Part shown: positions 1 through 63,833 of the stretch, one piece after another | Numbering within the stretch: position 1 is the stretch's first letter | Layout: every line of letters starts with the position of its first letter | NCBI RefSeq assembly: GCF_001194135.2 | Contig: NC_068982.1 | Coordinates: forward strand, 7,758,191 to 7,822,190 | Origin: Octopus bimaculoides | Taxonomy: Eukaryota | Length of the DNA stretch: 64,000 nucleotides | Direction: 5' to 3' | The notes under the pieces: model-generated | Database searches by the model: none | The model's input: only the letters and a program-made list of their open reading frames with translations | Told to the model about the DNA's origin: nothing | Made by a program: the position numbers and the translations under genes

Positions 1-1381
1 CAGTTGTGGTGGATGGTGCAGCACTTGTTGTAGTTGGGGCAGTGGTGGTGGATGGAACAGCACTTGTAGTTGGGGCAGTTGTGGTGGATGGTGCAGCACT
101 TGTTGTAGTTGGGGCAGTGGTGGTGGATGGTGCAGCACTTGTAGTTGGAGCAGTGGTTGTGAATTTTGCAGTAGTTGTTGTAGTTGGGGCAGTGGTTGTG
201 AATTTTACAGTAGTTGTTGTAGTTGGGGCAGCGGTGGTGGATAGTGCAGCACTTGTTGTNNNNNNNNNNNNNNNNNNNNNNNNNNNNNNNNNNNNNNNNN
301 NNNNNNNNNNNNNNNNNNNNNNNNNNNNNNNNNNNNNNNNNNNNNNNNNNNNNNNNNNNNNNNNNNNNNNNNNNNNNNNNNNNNNNNNNNNNNNNNNNNN
401 NNNNNNNNNNNNNNNNNNNNNNNNNNNNNNNNNNNNNNNNNNNNNNNNNNNNNNNNNNNNNNNNNNNNNNNNNNNNNNNNNNNNNNNNNNNNNNNNNNNN
501 NNNNNNNNNNNNNNNNNNNNNNNNNNNNNNNNNNNNNNNNNNNNNNNNNNNNNNNNNNNNNNNNNNNNNNNNNNNNNNNNNNNNNNNNNNNNNNNNNNNN
601 NNNNNNNNNNNNNNNNNNNNNNNNNNNNNNNNNNNNNNNNNNNNNNNNNNNNNNNNNNNNNNNNNNNNNNNNNNNNNNNNNNNNNNNNNNNNNNNNNNNN
701 NNNNNNNNNNNNNNNNNNNNNNNNNNNNNNNNNNNNNNNNNNNNNNNNNNNNNNNNNNNNNNNNNNNNNNNNNNNNNNNNNNNNNNNNNNNNNNNNNNNN
801 NNNNNNNNNNNNNNNNNNNNNNNNNNNNNNNNNNNNNNNNNNNNNNNNNNNNNNNNNNNNNNNNNNNNNNNNNNNNNNNNNNNNNNNNNNNNNNNNNNNN
901 NNNNNNNNNNNNNNNNNNNNNNNNNNNNNNNNNNNNNNNNNNNNNNNNNNNNNNNNNNNNNNNNNNNNNNNNNNNNNNNNNNNNNNNNNNNNNNNNNNNN
1001 NNNNNNNNNNNNNNNNNNNNNNNNNNGGTACAGCACTTGTTGTAGTTGGGGCAGTGGCGGTGGATGGTACAGCACTTGTCATTGGGGCAGTGGTGGTAGA
1101 TTTTACAGTAGTTGTTGTAGTTGGGGCAGTGGTGGTGGATGGTACAGCACTTGTAGTTGGGGCAATGGTGGTAGATTTTACAGTAGTTTTTGTAGTTGGG
1201 GCAGCTGTGGTGGATGGTACAGTACTTGTAGTTGGGGCAATGGTGGTAGATTTTGAAGCACTTGTAGTAGTTAAAGCTGTGGTGGTGGATGGTACAGTGG
1301 TTGTCTTGGATGATATCGTACTTCTTGTCGCTTTTGTAGAACTTATCAATGAAGCTGGAGAAACATTGAAAATAGATGAAT
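1..1381 (-). CDS. Exon 31 (partial): large mucin PTS tandem-repeat exon (e.g. TTSAAPSTTTAPT, TTTTVKSTTTAPT), gap at 260-1026
   Basis: ttctttag acceptor in phase 1. The frame is open on both sides of the gap, with 36/39-bp repeats encoding Thr-rich units. Continues beyond the window edge. Confidence 0.9.
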
Positions 1382-9558: not shown

Positions 9559-12500
9559 CCGTGTGTGTGTAAAACAAGTCATGACATGAATTGTAATGCA
9601 AATCAAAAATTAATTATAAGAATGAAAAAGGAGATACACTGTACTCAGGGGCATATTAGAGAAAATGGAGAACTGAGACAAAAAAAATTCTGTTACATAC
9701 TGAACAACATGATCAAAGAGAAAACTTACAAGACTGTATGAAAGAAAATTAATAAAATTCATACAGTATCATCAATGTTACACAGACAGCTTCTCTGCCT
9801 TCACACACACACATTGGAGAAGTGTTCCATTTAAATGAAATTCATCCCAAGAAATATGTTTCCCATTCGCTTGTATCATTACTCAAATCCATCTGCCATG
9901 CAAATCAATGGGAAAATGAGGTTCATGTAATGGAACCTGCTGCTAGGGCAAGATGCACCCCTCAGTGCCACAAACAGGAGATTCATGTGTCCTGCTTTTC
10001 CAAATCAAAGTTTTGAAAGAATACTTTCACAAAGTATATATCTACTTATTTATTACACGCGACATGCTTCATATTTGAACAATTATATTTCATATGCTCC
10101 TTACACCACTGAGACACTGAATATAACATATGTTAAAACAGAAAATGAAAACAATACGTTCCACATATATTTTACATTAATTTATCACAATATTTCTCCC
10201 ATATACATTCATATACACAAATATTGACATCTGAATCATACAAAATTCAATGCAGAGGAATCAAAAATAGAAGTTTGATGCTATATACAGGCATTGTGAC
10301 GTTCAGGATATAACAATTATTCCTGAAAAAAACAAAATCTTAAATTTCACACTTACTCGTTGGTTTCACACATATCTTCACAGAAACAGTCACTACCATG
10401 GGGATTTCTTTGGTAGTGGCAACAATGGTCAGTTGAATCTTTGTTTTTCCCGTTCCAGGTTTAATGCTAAAAGCCTCTGTAGGTGTCAGTAATGGAGAAA
10501 CAACCCTCTCTGGTATTACACTTACTTCAGACTCCGGTTCCTGTAAAAATCACAAGAGAATATTTAATGTAAATGGAGAAAATACACACTCAGAGAAAGC
10601 AGTGCATATCACATATCAAAACTTTGCAAACACACACACCAGGCAATTATTAAACTCACCTTTACTTTTCCAAACAATACTACTTGATAAATTTCTACAT
10701 TCTTTGATTTGACAAGATAAACTTCTCCTCCGTTGTTAAGGTCATCTCCAATATCTATATAAATAATCCTATTCTCCGTAGTATTCGTTTTCCAACCTTG
10801 TCCACTCAGTCGAATATCACTTGCATTACCAGCAGGATACAGTTTTATTGCACTGTCTGGTATCACTGCTTTGTCGTCCATTCCATAAACACTTTCACAT
10901 TTGGCTGCAAACAGGAAAACAATACACCGCACACTAAATATATATTTTCTATATACTGAAGCATATATACAATTTCATAATTGCAAGGTAAACATCAATC
11001 AAGCTGATAAATATAAACATATCGAAAGACATACATAACTTAAGATAAATGATAAATATCAGAGGTGAGATATACAAGAATTGCAATTTCAATGGGGCTA
11101 TGATTAAAAACAAATANNNNNNNNNNNNNNNNNNNNNNNNNNNNNNNNNNNNNNNNNNNNNNNNNNNNNNNNNNNNNNNNNNNNNNNNNNNNNNNNNNNN
11201 NNNNNNNNNNNNNNNNTGAATGCTTCCATTTACACAATTTCTCATTCATTTCAAGGTCACAGCCAACACAATAGATTTCATCACAAGTGATGACCTTCAG
11301 GCAAACGTTCCTGTCAGCACCTAATTGTACCTTCAGTTCTCGGCACGTATTCAGTTTTGACTGCTACTCACTTTCCGTGAGTACGCGAGGCACAAATTTT
11401 GCTGCAATTCCTCTCATTTGCAATCCATCACTCAAAACTCATTGGCACAAGCTCCAGGATACAAAAGTTATATCAACAAATTCATCAGTTATTCAGTGAT
11501 GTCTCTCCAACATCAGTTCATGAACGTTCAAGATGTTTTTATTTGCTTCGAAGACAGACAGTCGCTCTGAACAGGGTTCGTCTGCAAGCAAAAGGCGACC
11601 AGTCCTTAAACATGAAAACCACTCGTAATCTTGCATTTTTCACATGGCAGTGTATTCCTACACTGTTTGAAGAATGACAACTATTTCAGCTACCATTTTA
11701 ACTGGCACCAATTAGAATTTCACAGAAGTACGTTGTTCTTTTGTTTCAGCCATTGCAGAAATCAACATACATGGGATAAACACCGTAAAACAAACATGCA
11801 CCATGTGGGAGCATGATTTCATTCAATGCCACCAGTTAGCAGAATGATACCTGAGGGTCATATCAGCTTGCTTATTGCTGCAGAAGCCTGAACTGAAAGG
11901 GGATTGTCCCACAGAGAACATTTCTCGTTACATTTGGTTATTCGCCCGTATATTCAAAACAATGTATACAAATACATTAAATGTGATCATCAAAACAAAA
12001 ACAATCAATTATTCCTAGGAATAGTATACATGCCAATTATCTATCATAATTGCAAACAATGATAATTATCTTAGTATTTCAAAAGTGTAAAGCAAATAAT
12101 GAAGACATGGATTAATATGAGTTATACATGAGAAATTTTTTCATCTTTTTAAAATATTTTTGGCCAATAAACCTGAATCTGACATACTTACATGGTGTGG
12201 TAGACACTGTGCTCAGTACAGTGGAGACAATGGGTGACTCTGTTGTAGACACACTGGGTGACACTGTTGTAGACAAACTAGGTGATACTGTTGTTGATAT
12301 GCTAGTAGGGATCAGTGTTGAAACACTTGGTGTTGAAAGGTAAGCTAAAACATTGACAAGGATATTCCATTCAAGACACACATTGCAAATACAAACTTTA
12401 TATGCAATAATATGCATTCTAATTAACATGACATTTCCCCATGCGACACAAATTTCCTGAAAAATACCTTGAGCTTGCATAGTTTCCTGCAAAATAACAT

Positions 12501-18500: not shown

Positions 18501-19200
18501 TCCTGTAAAAACCACAAGGGTATATTTAATGTAAATGGAGAAAATACACACTCAGAGAAAGCAGTGCATATCACATATCAAAACTTTGCAAACACACACA
18601 CCAGGCAATTATTAAACTCACCTTTACTTTTCCAAACAATTCTACTTGATAAATTTCTATATTCTTTGATTTGACAAGATAAACTTCTCCTCCGTTGTTA
18701 AGGTCATCTCCAATATCTATATAAATAATCCTATTCCCCGTAGTATTCGTTTTCCAACCTTGTCCATTGGGTCGAATATCACTTGGATTACCAGGAGGAT
18801 TAAGTATGATCGAATCATCAGATATTACATTCTCATTGTCCATTCCATCAATATTTTCACATTCAACTGCAAAGTAAAATAAACATGTAGAGAAACAAGG
18901 AAACGCCATTTAACACATTGTATTTCTCTATATTATACATTGGAAAATGTACAACTAGTAGAGAATTCATAAAGTAGCTGTTTCTTGATTGGGGGGGGGG
19001 AATTTTCATACAGCTNNNNNNNNNNNNNNNNNNNNNNNNNNNNNNNNNNNNNNNNNNNNNNNNNNNNNNNNNNNNNNNNNNNNNNNNNNNNNNNNNNNNN
19101 NNNNNNNNNNNNNNNNNNNNNNNNNNNNNNNNNNNNNNNNNNNNNNNNNNNNNNNNNNNNNNNNNNNNNNNNNNNNNNNNNNNNNNNNNNNNNNNNNNNN

Positions 19201-51400: not shown

Positions 51401-53208
51401 ATTTATTTTTCTGAATGTCATTGTAGGACAGGTGTGAGAGGCTATATCTGGCTGGTTTAAACCAAAAACGTAGAATATTTGGGACAGCTTAAATGCTAAG
51501 AGGTTGAATGAAGGTATTTCTACTAATAGCACAATTGGAATGTTTGTTGTTGAAACCTACAGGTAAGCCCTTTAATTTTATCTATTTACTAATGTTTTCA
51601 TAACTGGTTCATCCATTTCTTCCCAATTATTCCTGGGTCTATTTCTAATGTGCGTAAATTCCGCATCCCCAAATTACATTTATTTTCTTGTAACCAGCAG
51701 TCATTCATCTTGTCCACCTCTACTAATACTTTTAATATCAAATAGCTTTCTCAACTGACAGTCAATGTTTCTCATAATTACTGCAAATGATAGAAAATTG
51801 CTGTAATATCTCCATATTCCCCTAATAGTAATAAGAAAGTAAAGAATAATTCTGACATATTTTTTTAAACATATTGTAGTAATTCCAGACTAAGATAATG
51901 GAAACTAAGGTTAAGAAATTAAACCAACTCACAGCAAACTTCATTTAATGTAGAGTTTTCACGCCAGTTAATAATGGCACCATTGTCAGCACATGCTTTG
52001 GCATAAGCTTGAAGTGCAACACACATTGCATTTGGATTAAATATTTCACTAACACACATATCTCGCATACATTGGTCATAATATTTTTGGTATGGAACAA
52101 TTTCAAAGCAGTATTGAAATTGCTTGCTGAATGGAATATAAGAGCAGTACTTTTTAGCTTCATCTTCATTCTGAAATATATAAATTTGAATAACTTTACA
52201 TTTGAATTTAAAATTTTGACTTTAATAAAAGTTTTAATAAAATTAAAAATATTATAATTAAAAAAAAAGTGAAAATTCTCATATCTGTAACAAAATGTTC
52301 TCAATAAACCAAGTCTCATTAAAACATAATTACTTTGTTAAATACGTTAGCTACATTAATAACTTGAGTGGTAAAAAGTATTTGCATGTATACAGAGTGG
52401 TGCAAAAGTAAGTATACAGTTATGAAAAAAGAAAACATACAATACTCATTTTTATCAAAAAAATAAAAAGTTAAGATAAAAGTATTATTATAGTTATGAT
52501 AGATGTATTATTGGGATTAATGATATTGAAAATATCAAAAATGAGGCTAACTAATTTAATATGCTTGGTTTTCTCTAGTATGAGAGAGTTCCGAACACTG
52601 CCTTTCCATGTAAAGCCACATCATGAATACATACGCAGTTTTTTAGTTGTTTGCAGAATGTCAGCTATGCTTCTGCTTCCAATTCTTCATATTAGATTTT
52701 GAAATACTAAATATTATATTTATGTTACCAATATATCAGCTATGACATTAGTAAAGAAATTCCATGATGCATAATTAGCCTTGCCGGAAGATCTTGAAGT
52801 ATCCTTATACAGAGCTCTTAAAGTTTTAAGAAAATAATTTCACTAATTTACCTTTGGGTTTGATATAAAAGTGGAGGCAAGTGGTTAAGATATTTATCTC
52901 ATAATCATAAGGTTGTGGGTTCATTTCTGGACCAAGCAGCACATTGTATTCTTGAACAAGTTACTTCACTTCATGCTGACCCTATTTAATGAGCTGTAAT
53001 GAGTACTAGCTAGATGCTACTGCAGCTCTCTCACTCTCTCTCTCTTTTTAAGACATGGCTATGTGGTAAGAAGTTTGCTTCCCAATCACATGGTACTGGG
53101 TTCAATCATCTTGCATGGCATATTGGGCAAGTGTCTTCAACTATAGCCTTAGGCCAACCAAAGCCTTGTGAGTGGATTTGGTAGACAGAAACTGGAAGAA
53201 GCCCATTG

Positions 53209-53243: not shown

Positions 53244-56006
53244 ATCTTTGTATCTATGTATCTCTTTTCCACCAGCACCACTTGACAACCAGTTGGTGTA
53301 TTTATGTCCCCCGTAACTTAGTCGTTTGGTAAAGAAGACCAAAACAATAAGTACCATGCTTTATAAAAATATAAGTACTGGGGTCAATTCAATCAACTAA
53401 AATTCTTCTTAAGGGTGAGATACCTGAAAGGGTATTTATGTCTGTGTGTAGTTAACTAGAAACTTGAAATAGTAAAAACAAAGTACATACTACAAAGCTA
53501 TACTCATTATTGAATGACAACTGGCTGTAATCTGATACTCCAACCTACCACCTGGCACACAGCCACTTCTCTTGGTTCCTCTTCCTCTGTCCGCTGAGAG
53601 GCCCTCTACTTGGTGACCTCACAGGAGCTAGCACCATATGTAAAGGCACCCATGCTAGCGCCATATAAAAAGTACCCATGCTGGTACCACAAACAAAACA
53701 CCCAGTACACTTTGTAAAGTGGTTGGCATCAGGAAGGACATCCAGCCATAGAAACCATGTCAAAACAGGTGAGTGGAACCAGGTGCAGCCCTCCAGCTGG
53801 CCAGCCCCTGTCAAATCATCCAACCCATGCCAGCATGGAAAATGAACATTACATGATGATGATGATGAACTATGATCATATCATTACTAAAAGTAATATA
53901 ATTTCAATTTATGTTTACATAAATAATAACTTACATTTATATTAACTTCACAGGGTTCGGACTCCACATCATCTCTTTGTGGAGCAAAGCAAGAGAAAGC
54001 AATAAATTCTTGAGCAAATTTTGTTTTATGAACAAGCAAACCAGTTCGGCTAACAAGTTCATTGTTGATATTAGAATCAAAATTGCCACAGAGACCTTCA
54101 ACCTGTCATGTAAAGTTAATATTATTTAATCAATAAACCTCAAAAGTCACAAATTAGACCAAGAAAAATAAAAAAAGCAAATATATTCTGTTTAGCTGAA
54201 AGCTTTAATATCTGTTAAAAGAACACAAGTGGTTGTCTAAGCTAAATTTTAGTTGTAAATTAAAGGTTTTTATCCAATTCTATCTCAAAATAATGCATGA
54301 AATATGAACCCTCACAGATATTAATACTCTACTTTTTTATTTAATTCCATCCACCCATCTTCTCTACCCACTATTCCTAGGAAGGTTGTGGGGATAAAAT
54401 CCTCAGGCACCTCTTCCATAGCAGAAGCAGCTATCATTATGCTTCCCACCAGGATCTCCAAACACGACCAAACTGAGACTGTGGATGTTATCCAACCATC
54501 TCATTCTTGGTTTACCCTTAGGTTTCCTGCCAGTTGACTCAGCTTCAAGAATCCATCTTGCAATTCTTTTCTGTAATGTTCTGATCACATGTTTGTAACA
54601 CCAGAGCCATGACTGCTCAAAGCAGGAAAGCAACTTATTTAATCTCAAATATTATCTAAAAGGTCTACATAGTAAAATTAACATATAAAAATGTAAATAA
54701 TAATACCAAGCAGTAAAAAGTTTAATTTACTTCTGAAATGAAATTGTAGAAAAGATTTTGTTTCATTTTTCTGTAACAATTTTTTTCTTTGCAATATATG
54801 CTTATTTAAATAAGATTTAATAAGCTTTCTGAAAACTATTTTAGAATTTCACTAATTAATAAAAGGCATTAAGAAACTTCAGAAAGTCAGAATATCTTAA
54901 AACAATTTTTTATGATTAATGTATATTCAAAATAATAGCACATTGTTTCTTTAAAGATTTTATATTAAAATTAAAAAGCTGCCTGAAGAATAATAGTTTA
55001 CTCACATATATGTTAAAATTAGTATACCATCAAAATTTCTGGAGTTACTCTTCATTTTTGTTTTTGTACTAACTTATTTCAATACTTTCAAAGATAACAA
55101 ATTCAATTCACAAATCTTATCACAAGTCATGGCTGACATTTGCATGAAAGAGAAGAGGAGGAGGAGGAGGCGACAAGGGGAGAAGTAGGAGGATGACAAG
55201 GAGAAGGGGAAGGACGATGAGGAGGAGGAGGAGGTATGGCATTGGATGCATAAGATTTTTAAAACAAAATATTATATTAAAACAATTTCTACATCATTTT
55301 ACATTTACATTTTTATATGCTCCAAAACAAAAAGTGGTTTCGTACCAAACCTCGATAATTTGACTTCAGAGTAATATAAGTTTGGGCACCAGCATAATGT
55401 AAAATACGGAAATCCAGTCCATCCACCACATAAAACAAAGACGATGCCTGTTTTATAATAATTTCTTTACTGAAAAAACTGTTATCTGATCTATAGTTGC
55501 CATTGACAAAAAATCCTTTCTTAGTGATTTTTGCAAAGAGATTTGCAGTTTCAATTTTGAGGCCAGTTGAACAATTAAATTCATCAAGATATGGGCTGCT
55601 GCATGGACCAAATTCCAGAGATATTTTCAACTCCAGTGAAGTTGATTTACTCTAAAACGACAGAAATACATCAATAATAATTAATTAATTTGGTAACTTT
55701 CAGAGTTTAGTTTTATACTAAATTTTCTACACTGAATCAATGTATTAATGCATCAGATACAATTAATTAGCCTAATAATGTTCTCTTAATCTGGTCACCA
55801 GCAGAAGTGGTGGTACATGTTCTCATGATGAATGGTTTGTCTAATTCTTCAATGTCTGCTTTAGCATGGTTTCTACAGCAGAATACCATTCTTAACACCA
55901 ACCACTCACCCACTTGGGCAAGTCTTTTGTTATAGCCACAAACCAATCAAGGCCTTCTGAGTGGATTTGGTAAGCAGAAACTGAAAGAATCATATCACAC
56001 ACACAT

Positions 56007-56301: not shown

Positions 56302-59300
56302 TATATGCATGTATGTATTTACATACATACATTATAGGCCATTTGGCATCATGCCATGCTTGAGAAGAAGACCCATTAAGTCAAGTAAAACCACAGTTGT
56401 GGCCAATGCCAGTGTCACATAAATGGCACACATGACAGTGGCACGTAAAAGCATCTATTATACTCTCAGAGTGGTTGGCATTGGGAAGGGCATCCAGCCA
56501 TAGAAACCATGCCAAATCAGACTGGAATCTGGTGCAGCCTTCCAGCTTGCTAGTCCTGATCAAACCATCCAACCTATGCCAGCATGGACAACGGATATTA
56601 AATGATGATGATGAGGTGTGGATCTGTGGTGAGAAATTCACTTCACTATATGGTTCCAGCTTCTTGGCTAAGTATCTCCTACTATAGCCTCAGGCCAACC
56701 AAAGCTTTGTGAGTGGATTTGGTAGGCAGAAACTGAAAGAATCCTGTTGTATATGTGTGCGTATGTCCTCCACCACCACTTAACAACCAGTGATGGTGTG
56801 TGTACAAATCCATAACCTAGCAGTTCAGCAAAAGTGAACCAATAGAATAAATAACAGACTTAAAAGAAAGTTAGTACTGGGGTTGGTTCATTCAACTAAA
56901 AATTCTTCAAGGTACTGCCCCATCATGGCCACAGTCTAATAAATGAAACAAGTAAAAGATAAAAGATAATTAAAAAAATAGCTTTTCTCAAATTTTTACC
57001 ATAAATATGTAACAATAGAATTTTACTGAAAATGCTAGAAAGATTACTTTTTCAACTTTAATGCAAGCAAAAGATTAGTTTTTGCCAACCTATTTAATCT
57101 GTAAATAATTCAGTTTATTAAATTTAGTGGCTAAGTTTTTATCAAACTTAAAAGAACATTAATCAGCTAAGTGATGATGAATGTCTATATATAAAAAAAA
57201 AACAAAAGAAAATAATTATCTTACTTGCACTAGTGTATATCGACAAGAAACTGGTTCGATTGTGTAATCCAAATTATCAAAAGTTTTAATACTATTGCGA
57301 CCAAGTATTGTACAAGTTCCAGGACATTCTTGCTTTTCACACACCCATTTACCATATTTACAAACACTATAGAATGAAGGAAAAAAATAAAATGAAGTTA
57401 TTTCTTTATCAATATGCAGTCAAATGCAAATTTTGACTTTGAAATTTTAAAGAACATGAATACAGCTTATGAAAATGACAAACATTATTCCAAAAATCAG
57501 TTATCAATTATATTATACATAATTTCACTATATCCATAGAACTACTTGATGCCTCTGCCAAATTATTATTGTTGGGGGAAATTGATTAGTCTAATTCATT
57601 AAATTTCACACTAGTATTCTTATAGTTAGGTTGAAAATCTACTTCATCAGATCTGCTGAAGCCCATCTGAATTATATTAATCCCCAAAAACTTGATTCAA
57701 AATTAATCAGTTAAATTCAACAAATGATTTTAGTCACATACCAAAGGTTGCAATCCATCTTAACAGTAGAATTCTCATCGAATTTCTTGCCTTCATATTC
57801 ACATGGGCATTCTTCCTTATTAATACATTTGCCGTTTTCATAAAACTTTCCAACAGGACATCGGCAAGCAGCCACACAAGGTAAATCACAATCACTAATT
57901 TCATCAGTGTTGCCACAAGTTCTAGGACAGGGGGCAGTGCATTCATCAAATTCAAACCCTTCAGGGCAAGTAATTGCTAATAAATAGAATAGATACATTT
58001 TAGAGAAAAATTAAATATGTTACTTGATATATTTTTTTCTGAAAAAAAGTGAATGTCAGTAGTATCAAAGTTGTAATTTGTCAATTCAAAGAGGTAGTGA
58101 CTCTACTTGGAGAGCCCCTATTGAGAAATGTTACTCCAAAGACCTTTCAGAGCAACCCTATTTCTACAGCTTTTATTCACAATTGTATTCTTTCGGTCAT
58201 TACCCAAGATTCCTGATCACAGATAAAGGTAGGCACAAACACCAAATTGAAGATAGCGAATTTGGTTCTTACACCTACCCTTCTTCAGATGAGTGAATGC
58301 TGAACCTGGTGCATTACTGAACCAGATACTGCAATTCTTGCACTTAATCCAGCCTCTTACTTTCCATCATTCATGAAAATGGACAAAAGCCAACTAACAG
58401 GAGACCAAGTGGCAGACCACTAAGAAGATAGTTGGATAACATCCATGTACTTAGTTGGTCTCACTAGGGGATCCAACAAGATCAATTGTAGATAGTTGAT
58501 TCTCACAGGGCCTGATGGAAGGCATCCTTGTGGACTCTACTCCTATGACCCTTCAAGGCACAAGTGAACAAAGAAAATGAGATGAGATCAAAAATTGAAT
58601 ATAAGCTAGAATGAAACTGTTTGACGAAATACAAACTTTAAGAAAACTGCAAAAGAAACTAAGACCAATGAACTGTATTATTAGAATTAAGTATGCCATA
58701 GAATAAAGGTTTAAAAACATACATTTTAGATGTACAATGGTGGACTAAAAATTTCATAGGCTGAAAATGAAGGACTGATGCTAGAGCTATGAAATCTTGC
58801 ATGCATTAATTTCAACTGTTCTTATTAATAACTGATTCATTTATTTCCAGGTAGACTGACATCAAACTGTTCAAAGAAGACTTCAAAATTAACTAATAGC
58901 GACCTGCCTTGTTGAAAATGGGTAAAATTTGGCATCGTGGTATTATCAAGTACTTGCAGAAAAAAAGGTTTAGCACTACAAAGACATTCATGCTGATATG
59001 GTTGCTACATTAGGATATGATGTTCCAGCTTTATCAACAGTGCAAAAGTGGGTAGCCTATGAACTTTTCAGCTGTCCATTGTACAAAATATTTCAGATGA
59101 ACAGAAATTATTAGTAATGGTAAGAGTTGAGCAATAAACAATATTTTCTTTTTTGATAATAATGACTTCTTTTCGTAGTATGGAAGATGCATCCTAGTCG
59201 TTCAAAATCATGCAAAGACTGCATTTCAGATGCAATGAAATCATATTCATACAAATTTTGACATGTAATAATAAATGTTTAAGTGAAGTTAACAGTTTTT

Positions 59301-61625
59301 GATTGATTTTAATGGCTAATATGTATCTTTCATGCTACAAAAGTTTTAGTCTCACGTCATATCACTTGCCTAGCAAGTACAAACCCAAAATGATTTCTAT
59401 TTTTTAACAGTGCAAGAAATAATGAAATAAATTATAAGTTGTTTTAATACAAAGATCAAAATGGGAGTGACACAAACACCAAAACAGGAAAGGATTACAT
59501 ACGACAAATGTTTTGTTTTCTCCACTTTGGAATATCATTTCCATTCAAAAAACACTGATGGGCAATACTTTCAACGGCTGTACATGCTGCTGTCATAGCT
59601 TCTTCTGCAGTATCAGAGGCACGGATCATCGAGAAGCAATTGTCTATTAAAACTGGCTTCTTTTCCTAAAATGACAGGTTGTTTGAAACAAAACATAAGA
59701 ATGTATCAGATAATAAAGAAATTACATAAGAAAATGTTATTAATATTAAGAAAAGTAAATGTTCAATGCTCTTAAAATGTAGTTTTACTCATGATTAACA
59801 AATTTTATGTAAATTTCTGCTTATTTAAATACAAAAATTATTATTTCTAAACCTCTCAACGAGGGACATTCAGGCACAGTACTCTAAAGTAAAGATTATT
59901 TCCCATCATAATGCATTAGTCCTGCTTGGGACGAATGTTACTGTTATTTAGCCCCAGGGGCTGATGTAATCAACTTAGGCTCTTCCCTGAAACTGCTGGC
60001 TTTGTGCCAAAATTTGAAACCAATATTTGCAGATTTTAATACATTTGTTGATAGCATATAACAGTTTCCTGGGGCCAAATAACAGTAATATTCATCCCAA
60101 CCAGGACTGCCGCATTATGCTGGCAAATAACCTTTACTCTGTTTATTTACAAAATCAGAATCTATTAAAACAGTAAAATTGATCACTTTTGGTTCAAAAT
60201 ATAAACATGAAGTTAATCATTTCTGAGGAATAATATGCAATGTAACAATGAAAGAAAAACTAAAGCATTTAAATCAAGAGGGTAACAAAAAGTAGGAATT
60301 TTTAATTACTTTTCAAAGGAAACCAAAAATTTGCTACCAACAAATGTATTAAAACCTGCAAATATTGGTTTCAAATTATGGCACAAGGCCAGCAATTTCA
60401 GGGAAGGGGCTAAGTTTATTACATTAACCCCAGTGTTCAACTGGTACTTATTTGATTGACTCTGAAAGGACAAAAGACAAAGTCAACCTTGGCAGCATTT
60501 GAACCCAGAACATAAAGACAGATGAAAAGCCACTGAGCATTTTTGTGCAACATGCAAATGATTCTACCAACACACCTTAAAAATCTGCAAATATTGTTAC
60601 TGCAATACAGATGTATTGATTATCTCTGCTCAATATTGTAAAAACTGGGCAAAGATTAAATTACAATTTCAGTTTCAGTACAATAGTAAAACAAATTACA
60701 AAAACAAAAAACAAAATACAACCTATTGACACAAATACGTCTGCTTCGGTACATTATTGTAATGATAACAACTATCATGATAGAAACTAAAGTAAAAGTC
60801 TCATGGAAACATTACGAAAAACAATGTAATATTTAAGAAAATAAATCAAAGAGATTAGAAGTGAAACTGAGTAACACTAATTTTTTTTAAAATATAAACT
60901 TACAGAAAGATCACAATTATAGAAAGTAAAGGCAACATGGCAAATTTTGTTAGCTTCTGGATATCTGTAATCAGGTGATGTTGAAAGTCTGTTATTTTTG
61001 CACTGAAAAAGAAAAAAATAGGACTTAAAAGTTACATAAAAAGTTTATGAGAGAAAAAAATATTTTCATAATTCTGAAGGGCTTTTATTTTTACGATGTA
61101 TAAAATGAAGAAAATAGTATCTTAAGTAATTAATTATTTCTGCTTTAGGCACAAGGTCTTGAAAATTGAGTGGGGGGAGCTAGTCGATTACATCAATCCC
61201 AGGTACTTATTTCATCAATCCTGAAAGGATGGAAAGCAAAGTGGACCTCGGCGGAATTTGAACTCAGAACATAATGACAGATGAAACACCGCTAAACATT
61301 TTGCTCAGCGTGCTAACGATTCTGCCAGCTTGCCACCCTAGTATCTTAGGTAATTAATGTCATATTTCACATTTTTATTCTGTCTAAATGAAAAGACAAA
61401 TTATGAAGACCAATTAGTTCTTATTTTAGCTTTTAACTTCCATTGAAGATGAAGCAGCAGCTTAAGTCTTTCTACAGCACCGAAATTTTGAGCACCTTTA
61501 AGGAATCTATTCATTCACAATTAGTTATTACTTTAGCAATCATTGAAAAAAGATCCCTCTTAATCCCAGGCAAAATGTTTGTTTCAAAGACATTAAATGG
61601 AGAAAAAATAAAGTAAAAACATAAA

Positions 61626-61670: not shown

Positions 61671-63833
61671 AAAACTTTAACGAAATATAACAATTATATT
61701 TATCATAAATGCTTACTAAATTTTCATAAATATCTAGGTCAATTCATCATCATCATTTAACATACGTTGTCCAAGCTGGCATGGGTTGGACAGTTTGACC
61801 AGGGCTAACAAGCAGAGGGGCTGCACCAGACTCCAGTCTGATTTGGTATGGTTTCTACAGATGCCATTTCTAACACCAACCACTCCGAGCGTTTAATGGG
61901 TGCTTTTACATGCCACCAGCATTGGTACCAGTTGCATGACACCAGTATCTGCCACACTATGATTTTACTTGGCTTGATGGATCTTCTACTCAAGCACAGC
62001 ATATTGCCAATAGTTTTGGTCATTTGTCATTGCTAATCAACAATCTCTTGAGGGGCTACTGATATTAAATATTACTGGGAGATCAGATTACATATAGATA
62101 TGCCAGTATATGAAGAAGGATATAAATGTAAACTGATAAGCTATTTTCATGAAATAACTTGCAATATCAGTAATAATTTAGTATCAGTAATAATTTACTT
62201 GCAATATCAGTAATAATTTTGATAATTAAAGTTATCAAAATTTGAATCTAATTAAAATTTATCTAAATTTCAATTACCTGATTTTAGATAAATTTGAATT
62301 ATCTAAATTAAATTCACTGAAGATCGAAATAATGTTGGTAACTCCTTATTACATGGTAATTAGTTACACACATAGATATCCTGGACAACAGTCAAAGAAA
62401 AACTATTCAAGTGATTGACATGAAGCCACCCAGAAACACACTCCATCATCTCTTCATCACTCACACCTCCTCTTCCCATTGCCTTTTCTTTTCAGTCACT
62501 GGCATTATTGTCTCTACTTCTCAGAGATGGATGGTCTCATGCCACCTCCACCCAAGTTCAGTCACTCTATTCATCATTTATGCAGTTGCCAAATTGCAAC
62601 AGACAGTCTAAGTGCTACATTAATGCTATCAATCCCTCCAGTTATGCAAGACTAGCAAAGGCTTGATGCACTGGTCCTTCTTTTAGACCTGCTGTTTTTC
62701 CCCAACATTTTTTCTTCCTTTTGTAGCATTAGCAGGGCAGTCGAATTACTTCGCCCCAGCGTAGCAGCACATTGGTGCTGCGTTCCTCCGCTCTTTAAAA
62801 GCTAACAGCAGAGGAATATAAATGACGACTTCCACTAGCTTTTAAAGAGCAGAGGAATGCAGCACCAATGTGCTGCTACACTGGGGCGAAGTAATTCGAC
62901 TGCCCTGCTAATGCTATATCATCGCCCTCGTTTGTTGTTGTTTAACACAGGTGAGCACTAGTCAGATAGTGCTATGATCAAAGGTTTTTTCAATTCTGAT
63001 CTTCCAATCTTTACTTGAAGCATTACGTAGCCAAAGCTAAATTATTTGATGTATCCTTCTGTGGCAAAGGAGATGTTGGTTAATGCAGGGTACGTATTTG
63101 AATGAATGCGTGTCAGAGGGCTAGTAACATTTAAATATATGTTTGCATAAAAGGCACAATAAAATACCACAAGACAATGTTCTCTTTAGGTTAACAAACC
63201 TGAGAATTTATTCTAGTGCAATCAAGATATTACCAGAGCTTTGCAGGTAAGCCTTCCTAATAATCGGGAAGGAATCAAGTGTCCATTCATTAATAATTGT
63301 TCAGTCTGTGTATCGTAGATATCAGCATTCCCGTCAATCGGGAGGGCTTACCTGCAAAGCTCCGGTAATATCTTGATTGTATTAAGGAATTAACTCATGC
63401 CTCCTACACCTTGTTGTCTTGTACGCTTATCTCTGTTGTGCCAACTACTTCATGTGTGAGCAAGGAATAAATTTGTTTGTTAACCAAAAGCATTACCTTC
63501 TGATTTTTATCGTTACCTTTATGTACCTTTTTTTCCTGTTTCTTTGTATTTAAATGTTATAAGTTAAAATGTGATCTTTTGTATAATTGTCCATAGAAAT
63601 AGAGAAAATTCTTTGTTTCATTGCAAATAGCCAATAGAAATGTTCATATTCAAAGACCCGTGTTCTTTTTATAATTTTGGATATCAAGTAACTTTTACTA
63701 AAACAGATATTAAATTTCAAAAAATTTATTTGCAAACCAATTGAAGTACCTACTTTATTTGGTGGTGTTATATATGCTTGAATAAATTCTTCTGAATTCG
63801 CTAAAATGTCACCTTCTCGATTGAAAAAGTCAT
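1..63833 (-). CDS. Partial multi-exon gene (31 exons here) for a large secreted polymeric-mucin/SCO-spondin-like protein: VWD-C8-TIL x3, LDLa, 3x divergent discoidin-like domain, PTS repeats
   Basis: 31 minus-strand exons with GT-AG boundaries join in matching phase without stops. They translate to VWD (TFDG, GLCGNFD), C8 (WR...C), TIL (C-x8-C...GCxC), LDLa (C...CDGVYDC..DEDDC) and Thr/Ser/Pro-rich segments. Start and stop lie outside the window. Confidence 0.93.
1596..1690 (+). mobile_element. pogo/Tigger-like DNA transposon terminal fragment
   Basis: TA|CAGTAATCCCTCGACTAT resembles a Tigger-type TIR; partner end not found. Confidence 0.5.
1755..2200 (+). mobile_element. CR1/L2-like LINE reverse transcriptase fragment (degenerate)
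   Basis: VPQETVVEPLLF..YADDTKL..LQNDLNAIYKWAEQNNMQFNA (RT domains 4-6), frameshifted. Confidence 0.85.
2205..3413. repeat. (TACA)n/(CA)n microsatellite with an assembly gap
   Basis: Visible tandem repeats on both sides of the N-run. Confidence 0.95.
3415..5050 (-). mobile_element. RTE/BovB-like LINE, 5'-truncated and decayed
   Basis: Minus-strand pieces: SISLLSIAGKI, QCGFRNNRGT, NGVKQGYVMAPTLF, FANDYAL, QLRWVGHVVRM. Confidence 0.92.
5215..8410 (+). mobile_element. RTE-clade LINE, near full-length (APE endonuclease + RT), with stops, frameshifts and two gaps
   Basis: IISAYAPQ, GDFNGHVG (APE); GKAPGPS, FVELEKAFD, LYADDL (RT); RLRWYGHVLRM, GRGRPRKTW (RTE C-terminus). Confidence 0.95.
8721..8810 (-). 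CDS. Exon 30: Ser/Thr linker (TYIPTTVSSSILSSQETISTSTITLSKSTL)
   Basis: tattcag / gtaagt, 90 nt, phase 1-1. Confidence 0.82.
10357..10540 (-). CDS. Exon 29: repeated domain copy C, C-half (EPESEVSVIPER...VKICVKPT)
   Basis: tttacag / gtaagt, 184 nt, phase 0-1. Confidence 0.92.
10660..10904 (-). CDS. Exon 28: repeated domain copy C, N-half (SKCESVYGMDDKAVIPDSAI...FGKVK)
   Basis: gtttgcag / gtgagt, 245 nt. Confidence 0.92.
11270..11720 (-). mobile_element. mariner transposase fragment
   Basis: Minus-strand YEWF...GIAAKFVPRVLT...KVITCDE, interrupted by stops. Confidence 0.75.
12192..12344 (-). CDS. Exon 27: PTS exon of cassette C (YLSTPSVSTLIPTSISTTVSPSL...VSTTP)
   Basis: gttttag / gtaagt, phase 1-1. 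Confidence 0.92.
12560..12850 (+). mobile_element. RTE RT fragment
   Basis: Similar to 7200-7400 (gatgacctag...ctaccagaactagagaag). Confidence 0.65.
13157..13373 (-). CDS. Exon 26: repeated domain copy B, C-half (KPTSGETYVFG...VTVSVKLCVKPS)
   Basis: tttacag / gtaagt, 217 nt (11 codons longer than copies A and C), preceded by a 79-nt intron. Confidence 0.92.
13453..13697 (-). CDS. Exon 25: repeated domain copy B, N-half (FECENIEGMANENVIPDTSI...YGRLK)
   Basis: ttttgtag / gtaagt, 245 nt. Confidence 0.92.
14302..14526 (-). CDS. Exon 24: PTS exon of cassette B with 24-bp (STTVSPSV) repeats
   Basis: cttcttag / gtaagt, about six tandem 8-aa units, phase 1-1. Confidence 0.92.
14842..18128 (-). mobile_element. 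Decayed Ty3/Gypsy LTR retrotransposon with both LTRs and most of pol deleted
   Basis: Diverged direct repeats at ~17925-18128 and ~14842-15056, both starting TG on the minus strand. PBS TGGCGAC at 17915-17921, PPT aagggggaga next to the 3' LTR. Gag CCHC knuckle CFECGKIGHKSSC, RNase H YSQIEKEA/ADSLS, integrase zinc finger HPG...C..C and core IVSDNGTQF. Confidence 0.92.
15530..15960 (+). mobile_element. SINE/RTE-tail repeat with (GAT)n tail inserted into the Gypsy element
   Basis: 3' end ...gcatggaaagcggacgttaaacgatgatgat is shared with many intronic copies. Confidence 0.85.
18319..18502 (-). CDS. Exon 23: repeated domain copy A, C-half (EPESEVSVMPER...VTVSVKICVKPT)
   Basis: tttacag / gtaagt, 184 nt, phase 0-1. 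Confidence 0.92.
18622..18866 (-). CDS. Exon 22: repeated domain copy A, N-half (FECENIDGMDNENVISDDSI...GWKT...YIDIG...FGKVK)
   Basis: ctttgcag / gtgagt, 245 nt like exons 25 and 28. Confidence 0.92.
19288..19383 (-). CDS. Exon 21: PTS exon of cassette A (AYLSTPLYTNISTTVPPSVSTTVSPSTMTTTT)
   Basis: atttttag / gtaagt, phase 1-1, homologous to exons 24 and 27. Confidence 0.88.
20860..21440 (+). mobile_element. RTE LINE 3' fragment
   Basis: HMNCLRKLLKINWQDKVPD...KRCFKD.LKASLKSFDINP; same clade as 3415-5050. Confidence 0.8.
21595..22084. repeat. Fold-back/MITE-like element with ~152-bp inverted arms (21595-21746 / 21933-22084)
   Basis: Arms are reverse complements at roughly 90% identity by eye. 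Confidence 0.88.
22114..22182 (-). CDS. Exon 20: short Thr/Ser linker (VSTTVKYTTYVSTTESSIVTQTT)
   Basis: ttcttcag / gtgagc, 69 nt, phase 1-1. Confidence 0.82.
24590..24735 (-). CDS. Exon 19: end of E3 plus single LDL-receptor class A repeat (CTLDQYQCSDGECINKTKVCDGVYDCNLADDEDDC)
   Basis: Six-Cys LDLa with acidic D-x-x-D-E Ca-binding tail, aatacag / gtgagc, phase 2-1; absent from the ORF track. Confidence 0.93.
25362..25582. mobile_element. TTAA-flanked piggyBac-type MITE (related copies at 37373-37597 and 51295-51507)
   Basis: ttaa-c(tt)tttagcatt ... aatgctaaaggg-ttaa termini; three similar ~220-bp copies. Confidence 0.7.
25680..25776 (-). CDS. Exon 18: end of TIL-3 / E3 (GDKCIPKTECPCLDEENIYPSG...NNCKN)
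   Basis: cttacag / gtaagt, phase 1-2. Confidence 0.92.
26802..26948 (-). CDS. Exon 17: TIL-3 (GVMCTGGREYRACG...EGCYCPEGQVED)
   Basis: ctttcag / gtaaga, phase 1-1. Confidence 0.93.
26986..27202. mobile_element. mariner-derived MITE
   Basis: TA-flanked TIRs tgagagagtgttgcaaagttcctgg / ccaggaacttttcagcacccactca; interior resembles a transposase 3' end. Confidence 0.75.
28717..29612. mobile_element. mariner derivative built from two 5' ends in opposite orientation
   Basis: TIRs tctgatcaataagtat..gact.ttgccatag at both ends. Transposase N-terminus on + (QRICIKFCRKLG) and on - (VFEWFK...RSGRP...SAKFVPKLL). Confidence 0.8.
30037..30146 (-). CDS. Exon 16: C8-3 second half (GCNLGGDCECLCTAVANFATKC...NWRSSELC)
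   Basis: GGDCECxC hallmark of mucin/VWF D3, gttttag / gtaggt. Confidence 0.95.
31578..33114 (-). mobile_element. Full-length decayed Tc1-family transposon (1537 bp)
   Basis: TA TSDs; TIR cactgaactgcaaaagaaac matches 18/20. Minus-strand EQAIGQLQAG (paired-like HTH), VFSDESRY, LNPIEHLWDEI. Confidence 0.92.
33328..33467 (-). CDS. Exon 15: C8-3 first half (YNSIRKQWAMESC...YYEDCLYDAC)
   Basis: ttttccag / gtaagt, phase 0-2. Confidence 0.93.
33571..33663. repeat. (TAG)n/(CAG)n microsatellite
   Basis: Direct observation. Confidence 0.95.
34137..34430 (+). repeat. 42-bp minisatellite, about 7 copies, within a SINE-like repeat
   Basis: Unit gcctccatgaggcctaacacttgataggaactcagctacctt starts at 34179, 34221, 34263, 34305, 34347, with degenerate flanks. 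Confidence 0.92.
34763..34971 (-). CDS. Exon 14: VWD3 C-half (GTRVYVHL...VQGLCGNFDRDSTNDF...HPCV)
   Basis: GLCGNFD...NDF...SW motif, ttaacag / gtaagc. Confidence 0.96.
35411..35752 (-). CDS. Exon 13: VWD3 N-half (ATCWASGDPHYFTFDG...VQWDQ)
   Basis: GDPH and TFDG motifs, ctttttag / gtaatg. Confidence 0.96.
38143..38195 (-). CDS. Exon 12: end of E' (LQCLNAIWVDNRLQNSCP)
   Basis: tttttcag / gtaaga, 53 nt, phase 2-1 bridges exons 11 and 13. Confidence 0.85.
39231..39258 (+). mobile_element. Possible Helitron 3' end
   Basis: Hairpin gtgacc-cacca-ggtcac, 7-nt spacer, then CTAG followed by T; 5' end not identified. Confidence 0.35.
39716..40070 (-). mobile_element. SINE/RTE-tail repeat with (CAT)n tail
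   Basis: Close reverse-orientation match to 15530-15960. Confidence 0.85.
40590..40731 (-). mobile_element. tRNA-derived SINE (representative; other copies near 9265, 22545, 31020, 33130, 41290, 43780, 49790, 53055, 56620)
   Basis: A box tggctgtgtgg and B box gggttcagtctc, followed by a conserved body ...ggtagacggaaactgaaagaagccc. Confidence 0.88.
40760..40940 (+). mobile_element. mariner HTH fragment
   Basis: HSGRPSKLDEDILKAKIKENSNISSRKLAEELEISKSTVHE. Confidence 0.75.
42063..42642 (-). mobile_element. Internally deleted mariner
   Basis: TIRs aaaaagtattgggattg at both ends; C-terminal LCDFFFFSKIKSYLKGTRFQDVKEIQ. Confidence 0.85.
42980..43071 (-). CDS. Exon 11: end of TIL' / E' (GSCIDRDACPCPYGETW...GCKE)
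   Basis: ttttttag / gtgagt, phase 0-2. Confidence 0.9.
44956..45151 (-). CDS. Exon 10: end of E2 plus TIL' (CVCTRGKWIC...CPKNQIW...EGCRCEKDLVMSPN)
   Basis: ttaacag / gtaagt, phase 2-0. Confidence 0.92.
47416..47668 (-). CDS. Exon 9: TIL-2 plus start of E2 (LECPVGSGQIYTECGSLC...GDD)
   Basis: TIL Cys pattern, tattcag / gtaatt, phase 1-2. Confidence 0.93.
47970..48044. repeat. (GT)n microsatellite running into a gap
   Basis: Direct observation. Confidence 0.95.
48139..48437 (-). mobile_element. Second tRNA-derived SINE family
   Basis: Minus-strand A box tggctcagtgg and B box gagttcaattcc; a related copy lies at about 49480-49740. Confidence 0.8.
48650..49140 (+). mobile_element. RTE LINE 3' fragment
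   Basis: GWKTFNSTKDLIKTK...AQKAMERSMLEISLQEHI, degenerate. Confidence 0.75.
49263..49353 (+). ncRNA. Degenerate type-I hammerhead-ribozyme-like motif
   Basis: CTGATGA core, gca/tgc stem II closing a long loop, GCAAAA in place of GAAA, near-palindromic ACCGATTGGT stem III, GTA triplet, interrupted stem I ggctacct/agaccagcc. Confidence 0.4.
50370..50417 (+). ncRNA. Minimal type-I hammerhead-ribozyme-like motif (Penelope-type)
   Basis: Stem I gtct/agac, (T)TGATGA core, stem II gggatat/atatccc, GAAA, palindromic stem III ACAGCTGT, GTA triplet. Confidence 0.6.
50508..51285 (+). mobile_element. mariner transposase 5' two-thirds, decayed
   Basis: IKFLYLKGHTPKE...GRP...; ITQGETWVHHYDPETKIQSKQWKH...GKVML. 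Confidence 0.9.
51933..52170 (-). CDS. Exon 8: C8-2 (NEDEAKKYC...YYDQCMRDMC...AYAKACADNGAIINWRENSTLNEVC)
   Basis: Canonical C8 Cys spacing, atttcag / gtgagt, phase 0-1; absent from the ORF track. Confidence 0.93.
53935..54102 (-). CDS. Exon 7: end of VWD2 (VEGLCGNFDSNINNEL...EPCEVNIN)
   Basis: GLCGNFD motif, gacag / gtaagt. Confidence 0.92.
54400..54640 (-). mobile_element. RTE 3' fragment (same family in + orientation at about 58270-58520)
   Basis: ARWILEAESTGRKPKGKPRMRWLDNIH. Confidence 0.7.
55346..55651 (-). CDS. Exon 6: VWD2 core (SKSTSLELKISLEFGPC...ITLKSNYRGL)
   Basis: 306-nt open frame, gttttag acceptor, weaker gtacga donor, phase 0-0. Confidence 0.85.
57225..57366 (-). CDS. Exon 5: end of E1, start of VWD2 (CVCKYGKWVC...CPGTCTILGRNSIKTFDN...CRYTLVQ)
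   Basis: ctatag / gtaaga, phase 2-0, TFD motif. Confidence 0.93.
57742..57976 (-). CDS. Exon 4: TIL-1 plus start of E module (ITCPEGFEFDEC...CPCEYEG...DCNL)
   Basis: Full 10-Cys TIL pattern, ttattag / gtatgt, phase 1-2. Confidence 0.95.
58735..59081 (+). mobile_element. mariner-derived MITE retaining the transposase N-terminus
   Basis: TA-flanked TIRs caatggtggactaaaaatttcataggct / agcctatgaacttttcagctgtccattg; MGKIWHRGIIKYLQKKG...STVQKWVA. Confidence 0.85.
59503..59665 (-). CDS. Exon 3: C8-1, EKKPVLIDNC...AACTAVESIAHQCFLNGNDIPKWRKQNIC
   Basis: cattttag / gtatgt, 163 nt, C8-terminal WR...C motif. Confidence 0.9.
60904..61002 (-). CDS. Exon 2: start of C8-1, CKNNRLSTSPDYRYPEANKICHVAFTFYNCDLS
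   Basis: tttttcag / gtaagt, 99 nt, phase 0-0. Confidence 0.85.
62724..62916. repeat. Near-perfect 81-bp inverted repeat with a 31-nt loop (MITE-like)
   Basis: 62724-62804 versus 62836-62916 match at 78/81; begins and ends with TA. Confidence 0.95.
63219..63379. repeat. Inverted repeat with ~39-bp arms and internal sub-hairpins
   Basis: 63219-63257 versus 63341-63379 match at 37/39. Confidence 0.9.
63754..63833 (-). CDS. Exon 1 (in window): end of VWD1, DDFFNREGDILANSEEFIQAYITPPNK
   Basis: Acceptor cattcttag, donor gtaggt. Phase-0 end joins exon 2. DDF...F pattern of VWD C-termini. Confidence 0.75.

Follow-up and report, generated by a model that had tools for sequence, protein, structure and literature searches.

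Cys-rich and Ser/Thr-rich open frames are aligned along the minus strand of a 64,000-nucleotide stretch of the Octopus bimaculoides genome (contig NC_068982.1, positions 7,758,191 to 7,822,190; hereafter the window). Do these frames belong to one gene and, if so, to what kind of gene? A model that had read the letters alone (the sequence-only reading) took them for a chimera of mucin and SCO-spondin, in which D1-D2-D'D3 assemblies are followed by one LDLa module, three discoidin-like cassettes and a large proline-, threonine- and serine-rich (PTS) exon. In the analysis described here, the favored interpretation, to which we attach a probability of about three in four, is that the window represents the middle part, 64 kb long, of a single very large gene for a secreted, mucin-like protein of the SCO-spondin family. 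New are the corrected structure as a single gene, the regularity with which PTS and discoidin-like segments alternate, and a discoidin-like family for which Pfam has no model; the class of SCO-spondin-like, F5/8C-bearing invertebrate mucins as such was already known.

A single exon chain on the minus strand

Exon cores were mapped by tblastn using the O. bimaculoides protein A0A0L8FUP5 from UniProt (P0001; 902 amino acids), an O. sinensis protein (P0007) and two Argonauta proteins (P0002 and P0003). Junctions were then fixed by a search for donor/acceptor pairs and by direct reading of the DNA. The window exons were up to 100% identical to A0A0L8FUP5. The gene so delineated lies on the minus strand, runs from position 63833 down to position 1 and comprises 30 exons separated by introns that are all of the GT-AG type (Table 1). 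Joined together, the exons form one open frame of 1817 codons that extends up to an assembly gap at 260-1026. The exon chain of the sequence-only reading is therefore real. The modules succeed each other in the order D1 tail, D2, D', D3, a single LDLa, three repeats that each consist of a PTS mini-exon and a cassette of two exons, then a fourth PTS mini-exon, and lastly the large PTS exon. A Pfam scan of the spliced product identified VWD (8.7e-53), C8 (6.3e-29) and TIL (5.1e-22; four copies) domains, a VWF-like module and one LDLa, in agreement with the single LDLa initially claimed.

The D1-D2-D'D3 order proposed from the letters needs qualifying on one point: D2 and D'D3 are present as a whole, but D1 is represented in the window by its tail only (the final 26 codons of VWD1, followed by C8-1, TIL-1 and E1). 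There are, in other words, two complete VWD-C8-TIL assemblies and the end of a first one, while the homologues P0002 and P0003 have three VWD domains. In the O. sinensis and Argonauta homologues, the missing head consists of a Cys-rich, EGF-like region, in which Pfam finds EGF_PEAR1L (weakly) and a JAG1-like EGF2, and of VWD1. By comparison with these homologues, the sequence beyond position 64000 should encode most of VWD1, preceded by a signal peptide and a head of the EMI/EGF-like type. Residues 1-1072 of the product can be aligned with Argonauta P0002 at 56.3% identity without any indel of four or more residues, a 53-nt exon (E'b) being required to restore the colinearity. The same residues are colinear with the solved N-terminal D1-D3 regions of MUC5B, MUC5AC, MUC2 and VWF. 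Judging from these alignments, the colinearity with P0002 and with the mucin/VWF N-terminal regions is far above chance.

Past the D assemblies, phase 1 is found at each unit boundary, from the LDLa donor through the acceptor of the large PTS exon. Exon A of a cassette measures 245 nt (phase 1-0); exon B, in phase 0-1, has a length of either 184 or 217 nt; all three cassettes announced by the sequence-only reading are intact, with two exons each. The large PTS exon was likewise confirmed, from 1381 down to 1 and onward. The PTS pieces contain 53-60% Ser+Thr (56-60% in the large exon, which is built on a 75-nt tandem repeat) and no Cys. At the protein level, cassettes 1 and 3 share 82% identity. 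Over a 300-nt stretch with the A-B intron and exon B (10334-10633 versus 18296-18595), their identity reaches 95%, making them far closer to each other in this stretch than either is to cassette 2. The inclusion of intron sequence suggests a recent duplication or gene conversion.

The cassettes as a divergent discoidin-like family

A joined cassette is 144-155 amino acids long and has one Cys near either end; IIYIDIGDDLNNGGEVYLVK is an example of a peptide from the cassettes. Pfam assigned neither the single cassette exons nor the joined cassettes to any family, PF00754 (F5/8C) included, even at E <= 10. Searching the PDB sequences with cassette profiles returned chance lipocalin matches or nothing, and a word-indexed protein search with the cassette profile returned two fragments only. 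A full HMMER scan with an exon-A profile, on the other hand, yielded 35 relatives. Among them are multi-copy proteins: a "mucin-2-like" protein from the chiton Liolophura, with seven copies between PTS stretches, a VWFD protein from the flatworm Macrostomum lignano, and proteins from metagenome eukaryotes. In a hemichordate protein with true Pfam F5/8C domains, the exon-A profile also matched, weakly, the beginning of these domains. Pfam found nothing in the repeated module of the scanned relatives.

The likely nature of the cassettes emerged from structure prediction. An AlphaFold2 run on P0054 (RefSeq XP_052821907.1) without an alignment was discarded as unusable (predicted local distance difference test, pLDDT, 36.5). 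When supplied with an alignment of 47 sequences, the program modelled cassette 3 with a pLDDT of 92.7 and a predicted template-modelling score (pTM) of 0.85. The top Foldseek matches of this model in the PDB were the C2 domain of factor VIII (FVIII), the b1 domain of NRP2 and the C2 domain of factor V (TM 0.57-0.62, probability 1.00), and the cassettes are 13-18% identical to solved discoidin domains. The next matches were APC10 and CBM16/32; hence the fold is galactose-binding-domain-like, with discoidin as the best match. Aligned by hhalign with hemichordate F5/8C domains plus FVIII C2, the cassette family reached a probability of 93.5% from end to end, with both Cys residues in register. 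These residues (C2 and C138) do not vary among 23 members of the family and are aligned to the discoidin Cys pair; an N-terminal C..GM...IPD motif is common to cassettes and discoidin domains. The predicted fold and a probable remote homology (AlphaFold2, Foldseek, hhalign) thus agree with the term "discoidin-like" used in the sequence-only reading, though Pfam is blind to the resemblance. The model-based evidence supports the view that the cassettes form a divergent discoidin-type family that lacks a Pfam model.

Five of the metagenome proteins (P0062, P0070, P0073, P0078 and P0084, from the Joint Genome Institute, JGI) show TIL and VWC domains followed by three to four copies of the discoidin-like module, some copies being connected by His-rich linkers (HPHDEHHPH...). 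P0078 and P0084 have a further unassigned repeat upstream, between PTS stretches.

One gene or several

The public databases give a fragmented picture of the locus: GenBank/RefSeq models of 826, 309 and 774 amino acids, and the UniProt model of 902 amino acids. The 826-amino-acid GenBank model, listed with TIL, VWD, C8, TIL and LDLa domains, ends at window position 18571, which corresponds to the stop encountered upon reading through cassette exon A1. Two further models span junctions of the cassette region: P0053 joins B1 to PTSa, and P0054 joins A3, B3, PTSc and the large PTS exon, the latter through an acceptor 27 nt further in. A0A0L8FUP5 lacks the 53-nt E'b exon and includes instead an exon made of a dispersed repeat near 39650-39823 (...SNSPTHASLESTLNDDDDDDDD...), with further copies in other parts of the window; the model begins (MYLFYLL...) within the intron that precedes TIL-1. 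Its false C-terminus has its source in a transposase-like ORF (open reading frame). A literature search found no paper on A0A0L8FUP5, LOC106867630 or XP_052821907.

The region past window position 1 was examined in locus L007 (21418-24068). There, position 1 adjoins a further gap of 2236 N in the same PTS array. Beyond this gap the PTS frame resumes and, passing ...TTSTTGITASTVIYFVKPVTKIILTLPPFPPVSTRNVTVMNYTVATTTPSAIITPG stop-free, reaches a phase-1 donor (GTATGT) at L007 24068. The annotated ATG of the next model (774 amino acids) is in frame inside the PTS exon, and a precomputed domain list credits this model with TSP_1, TSP1_spondin and TIL. Given the frame and the domain list, the most economical reading is that the large PTS exon splices into TSP1/TIL exons.

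Could the stretch nonetheless consist of several genes lying head to tail, one with VWD and LDLa, at least one small gene of cassettes plus PTS, and one with TSP1 and TIL? This is how GenBank/RefSeq and UniProt present it; moreover, the introns are long and hold transposons. However, the models begin inside domains or in transposon or intron sequence (MYLFYLL..., MRGIAAKFVPRVLTET), without a signal peptide, and they end via read-through into introns; the start codon of the 774-amino-acid model falls within an exon that is already open. In addition, all junctions are phase-compatible, and the same order of modules is found in Argonauta and in the flatworm protein P0082. The compatible phases, the joining models P0053 and P0054, the manner in which the 826-amino-acid model ends and the Argonauta layout, with its identical intron phases, argue for one gene rather than two, as the sequence-only reading had assumed, and render a tandem of separate genes unlikely. 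Owing to the assembly gaps and the transposon-filled introns, the annotation appears to have broken up a single gene of the SCO-spondin type, so that at least three models result which look unrelated.

Octopod paralogues

Pairwise identities distinguish at least three octopod paralogues. Paralogue A comprises the window gene and O. sinensis P0007 (94%). Paralogue B, which is 48-59% identical to the window gene, comprises Argonauta P0002 and the O. vulgaris proteins P0009 and P0004, these last two being 79.5% identical to P0002. Paralogue C comprises O. bimaculoides XP_014768181.2, named SCO-spondin, and Argonauta P0008, named mucin-2-like; the XP_014768181.2 gene spans 133 kb on the same chromosome as the window gene. 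Argonauta P0002 had been considered as the orthologue of the window gene and was rejected: its identity is 79.5% with P0009 but 56% with the window gene, so that it is orthologous to a paralogue.

In Argonauta hians, PTS mini-exons and at least four cassettes are found on the same strand directly after the LDLa end of a "SCO-spondin-like, partial" model, with intron phases identical to those of the window gene. Since these cassettes belong to paralogue B, the plan in which LDLa is followed by alternating PTS and cassette exons must be older than the duplication. A second locus with Argonauta-type cassettes is present in O. bimaculoides itself, on an unplaced 4.6-kb contig (P0061, XP_052834281.1), and is probably the tail of paralogue B.

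Probable family placement

The best matches outside the cephalopods are proteins with six LDLa repeats and Branchiostoma SCO-spondin, the latter being the best named one. At NCBI, the O. sinensis orthologue is called SCO-spondin-like and the paralogue on the same chromosome SCO-spondin; more distant relatives (P0005 and P0006) have D1-D3 followed by six LDLa. In the window gene, a single LDLa stands where the SCO-spondin type has a cluster, and the F5/8C-type domain expected after LDLa is there in three divergent copies. Invertebrate mucin-like proteins were reported to cluster with, and to be most similar to, SCO-spondins; F5_F8 domains characterise those of lophotrochozoans, and none of the invertebrate mucins could be assigned to a vertebrate MUC family (Lang et al. 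2016; PMC4948705). No cephalopod member was noticed in that paper, in which no completed search for one was made. With the class described and the relatives already named SCO-spondin or SCO-spondin-like, the idea of a new chimeric plan loses ground, and "chimeric" is an overstatement. As the PTS frame runs on into the model listed with TSP1/TIL, the gene would not end in the manner of a mucin, and its plan would be better described as that of a SCO-spondin with PTS inserted than as a half-and-half hybrid. A search of the literature for invertebrate gel-forming mucins with discoidin domains found no paper.

Descent from a gel-forming mucin of the vertebrate MUC2/MUC5 type, with secondary acquisition of LDLa, could account for the D1-D2-D'D3 region, for its colinearity with MUC5B, MUC5AC and MUC2, for the PTS in a large repetitive exon, and for the mucin-2-like name of one Argonauta paralogue. 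Against it stand the LDLa itself, the EMI/EGF head of the homologues, a downstream model listed with TSP1/TIL rather than D4-B-C-CK, and a Pfam scan of the spliced product in which no CysD (Mucin2_WxxW) was found. Since, in addition, SCO-spondin-type proteins are the best relatives outside the cephalopods and Lang et al. assigned invertebrate mucins to no vertebrate MUC family, such orthology is very unlikely. Hemolectin/hemocytin fares no better. Its plan of three VWD units, F5/8C domains and two more VWD units (PMC4948705) is matched in its first half by the octopus gene, with three VWD, discoidin-type domains and small PTS; but neither the window nor the 7 kb beyond it contains a VWD after the cassettes, the next model is listed as TSP1/TIL, and LDLa and the EMI/EGF head are foreign to hemolectin, so that this assignment is very improbable.

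A number of observations weigh against the interpretation of the locus as a polymer-forming SCO-spondin-type mucin gene. Vertebrate SCO-spondin has about ten LDLa repeats and the octopus gene one. The CGLC (CxxC) motif is tied to multimer formation in VWF and mucins; no CGLC occurs in residues 1-1071, where D2 reads VEGLCGNFD and D3 VQGLCGNFD (in the O. sinensis orthologue, D1 has LRGLCSNYD). Because D2 and D3 have EGLC and QGLC in place of CGLC, polymerisation through N-terminal disulfides is not assured. With regard to the cassettes, the Foldseek E-values of the model are only about 1e-3, and hhalign of the cassette family with human FVIII C2 alone was not significant. The LDLa-PTS0 junction and the junction between PTS and the thrombospondin repeats (PTS-TSR) are predicted only from phase, frame and comparison, and the domain content of the 774-amino-acid model was taken from the precomputed list, not from its sequence. 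The Argonauta locus illustrates the family plan and is not the window gene's orthologue. Finally, no peptides of the window gene were found in the examined parts of the supplements to the O. vulgaris skin-mucus proteome. The SCO-spondin-like protein in that proteome, A0A7E6F2Q3, is the product of a different gene and has multiple LDLa.

Exons, assembly gaps and transposons

The exons are listed in Table 1. Positions 1-16417 of the window are 100% identical to chromosome CM046602.1 loci (GCA_001194135.2), which places the window in the chromosome-level assembly. The window has a G+C content of 36.5%, contains ten runs of N and is rich in microsatellites and transposon ORFs.

Table 1. Exons of the octopus gene in order of transcription (window coordinates)
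Feature	Position	Strand	Evidence or remark
Last exon of VWD1 (DFFNREGDILANSEEFIQAYITPPNK), phase-1 acceptor	63754..63833	-	tblastn with O. sinensis P0007, splice sites
C8-1 exon a	60904..61002	-	tblastn, splice-pair search, DNA reading
C8-1 exon b	59503..59665	-	tblastn, splice-pair search, DNA reading
TIL-1 exon	57742..57976	-	Pfam TIL 1.5e-10; 100% identical to P0001
E1 + VWD2 start	57225..57366	-	Pfam scan of exon ORFs, tblastn, splice-pair search
VWD2 middle exon	55346..55651	-	tblastn, splice-pair search, Pfam on spliced product
VWD2 end (VEGLCGNFD)	53935..54102	-	tblastn, DNA reading
C8-2 exon	51933..52170	-	Pfam C8 4.4e-16
TIL-2 exon	47416..47668	-	Pfam TIL 1.6e-10
E2 + TIL' (D' start)	44956..45151	-	Pfam TIL 4.8e-06
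E' exon a	42980..43071	-	tblastn, DNA reading
E'b, 53 nt (QCLNAIWVDNRLQNSCP)	38143..38195	-	pattern search and splice sites
VWD3 exon a	35411..35752	-	Pfam VWD 9.2e-21
VWD3 exon b (VQGLCGNFD)	34763..34971	-	Pfam VWD 3.9e-08
C8-3 exon a	33328..33467	-	tblastn, splice-pair search
C8-3 exon b	30037..30146	-	Pfam C8 1.6e-09
TIL-3 exon	26802..26948	-	Pfam TIL 1.1e-06
E3 exon	25680..25776	-	tblastn, splice-pair search
E3 end + single LDLa (CTLDQYQCSDGECINKTKVCDGVYDCNLADDEDDC), phase-1 donor	24590..24735	-	Pfam Ldl_recept_a 31.2 bits (exon ORF), 22.2 bits (spliced product)
PTS mini-exon 0 (PTS0), 96 nt, 32 aa, 53% S+T, phase 1-1	19288..19383	-	
Cassette 1 exon A (A1), phase 1-0	18622..18866	-	
Cassette 1 exon B (B1), phase 0-1	18319..18502	-	joined to PTSa in P0053
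PTS mini-exon a (PTSa), 75 aa, 24-nt repeats, phase 1-1	14302..14526	-	
Cassette 2 exon A	13453..13697	-	
Cassette 2 exon B, exceeding B1/B3 by 11 codons	13157..13373	-	
PTS mini-exon b (PTSb), 51 aa	12192..12344	-	
Cassette 3 exon A (A3)	10660..10904	-	identically spliced in RefSeq XP_052821907.1
Cassette 3 exon B (B3)	10357..10540	-	P0054 splicing; dN/dS 0.32 versus the other octopod's orthologue
PTS mini-exon c (PTSc), 30 aa	8721..8810	-	in P0054
Large PTS exon, runs off window	1..1381	-	acceptor 1381, or 1354 as in P0054

Nine of the ten assembly gaps are intronic. The exception, 260-1026, falls within the PTS array: the same 75-nt unit is found on either side, and both flanks are open in the PTS frame over their full length. 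The flanking frames are offset by 767 mod 3, but since the length of the gap is merely estimated, the frame may yet be continuous across 260-1026. Gaps 2359-3234, 6292-6574 and 7763-8066 lie in the 7.3-kb intron 8721-1381, amid reverse-transcriptase fragments of the LINE (long interspersed nuclear element) type. Gap 11117-11216 is in the PTSb-A3 intron; the matching stretch of an orthologous octopod contig (L002) holds a mariner-like ORF only. Gap 19016-19200, in the 421-nt PTS0-A1 intron, may hide a small exon, but the phases fit without one. The remaining gaps (29614-29736, 43317-43607, 48045-48137 and 56070-56204) are intronic as well and hide no coding sequence, because the P0002 alignment is free of indels. 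Most gaps are bordered by microsatellites of the (CA)n/(TA)n type (2130-3420, 19201-19260, 43204-43740, 47900-48620 and 55890-56340), which yield long spurious ORFs rich in Cys, Val, His or Thr on both strands.

Transposon remnants are scattered through the introns. The intron preceding the large PTS exon is filled with RVT_1 fragments at 1784-2122 (+), 3974-4327 (-) and 6692-7168 (+). Between B1 and PTSa (14887-18128) lies the remnant of a retrotransposon of the long-terminal-repeat (LTR) type, with minus-strand ORFs at 15936-16250 and 16801-17067 and matches to the integrase core (rve, 7.1e-08) and to reverse-transcriptase RNase H (2.8e-07). On either side of this remnant are direct repeats of 170 nt (14887-15056 and 17959-18128), which share 78% identity and may be the LTRs. 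The C8-2/TIL-2 intron contains a mariner/Mos1-type transposase ORF at 50639-51028 (+; HTH_48, 1.4e-05), and other transposase-like ORFs are found at 28875-29169, 32130-32456 and 40804-41043.

The ratio of nonsynonymous to synonymous substitutions (dN/dS) in the cassettes is 0.32-0.34 relative to another octopod, in which the splice sites are also kept; by this measure the cassettes are under purifying selection. The density of transposon insertions and gaps in the cassette/PTS part, together with the near-identity of cassettes 1 and 3 across an intron (a similarity owed in part to duplication or conversion and not to constraint), might suggest decaying pseudo-exons behind a shorter functional gene, but this is highly improbable for exons of which 11 out of 11 are open with canonical splice sites, which RefSeq models splice, which bear the mark of selection just described, and which encode a domain of wide distribution and confidently predicted fold.

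Proposed working and significance

By analogy with VWF and the gel-forming mucins, the N-terminal D assemblies would drive multimer formation in the secretory pathway. The composition of the Ser/Thr-rich exons is that expected of densely O-glycosylated, extended, water-binding spacers. Between these, the discoidin-like beta-sandwiches would form folded knots, probably with ligand-binding capacity if the predicted fold is any guide, and may cross-link the polymer or tie it to glycan, lipid or matrix, as CysD domains do in mucins. The product would then be a component of mucus, of an adhesive or of a fibre-type extracellular material. The suggestion of an uncharacterised polymeric glycoprotein, made in the sequence-only reading, holds up in this sense, with polymerisation argued by analogy.

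More tentatively, one might imagine that in octopods SCO-spondins turned into mucins (at least three paralogues), the LDLa array being cut to one while discoidin domains multiplied and became interleaved with O-glycosylated PTS. The cassette family would be an undescribed one, shared with the chiton mucin-2-like and flatworm VWFD proteins. The window gene would provide the main polymer of one secretion, be it the mucus of suckers or skin, the coat of the eggs or a fibre of the Reissner type, with the cassettes acting as glycan or matrix cross-links. As a whole, this scenario is speculative and somewhat doubtful.

In practical terms, the analysis provides a corrected structure for a gene that the annotation splits, one public model of which has a spurious repeat exon and misses the 53-nt exon. 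The occurrence of mucin domains within a SCO-spondin plan lends support to the common origin of invertebrate mucins and SCO-spondin envisaged by Lang et al., and bears on the relation between the Reissner's-fibre protein and mucus polymers. The cassette family, which recurs between PTS stretches in proteins of molluscs and flatworms, is a candidate for domain libraries and a possible glycan- or matrix-binding module in mucus or bioadhesives. Specialists of mucin evolution will find nothing surprising in these points.

Comparison with known systems

Canonical F5/8C domains (PF00754) resemble the cassettes in predicted fold, length and terminal Cys pair; the cassettes nonetheless make up a family of their own, with relatives in chiton, flatworm and metagenome eukaryotes. 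In the gel-forming mucins and VWF, the D1-D2-D'D3 region is colinear with that of the octopus protein, and the mucins likewise have PTS in a large tandem-repeat exon, with folded domains (CysD) interspersed. The octopus gene differs by having neither CysD nor CGLC, by its LDLa and discoidin-like domains, and by a continuation listed as TSP1/TIL where gel-forming mucins end with D4-VWC-CTCK.

Adhesive proteins offer parallels in overall layout. The flatworm adhesive protein Mlig-ap2 combines VWD-TIL-LDLa with central repeats and C-terminal TSP1 repeats (PMC6410801), and thus shares with the octopus plan the N-terminal VWD, TIL and LDLa and the long central repeats, as well as the C-terminal TSP1 predicted for the octopus gene. 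In limpets, a SCO-spondin-like protein with three VWD and five LDLa is a pedal sole product found in adhesive mucus (PMC7333891); of the two limpet proteins in the comparison set, Patella P-vulgata_3 and P-vulgata_6, the former, whose expression is in the pedal sole, combines three VWD with C8, TIL and five LDLa. The repeat types of these flatworm and limpet proteins differ from those of the octopus protein, and their role in adhesion was shown experimentally, whereas the octopus gene is known from its sequence. The Macrostomum VWFD protein P0082 has EGF, D1-D3, an LDLa-like module, PTS and members of the same cassette family.

Vertebrate SSPO, which forms Reissner's fibre, displays the same order of modules (three VWD-C8-TIL units, LDLa and F5/8C-type domain, then TSP1 mixed with TIL, a part that is predicted for the octopus gene) and shares the EMI/EGF-like head, known here only from homologues. 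Besides the difference in LDLa number, SSPO has one canonical F5/8C domain as opposed to three divergent discoidin-like ones, and does not have the long Ser/Thr-rich mucin exons of the octopus gene. It is to the class of Lang et al. (2016; PMC4948705), marked by multiple VWD-C8-TIL units with PTS domains and, in lophotrochozoans, F5_F8 domains, that the octopus gene probably belongs; within this class it stands out by discoidin domains that are too divergent for PF00754 and that alternate regularly with PTS mini-exons.

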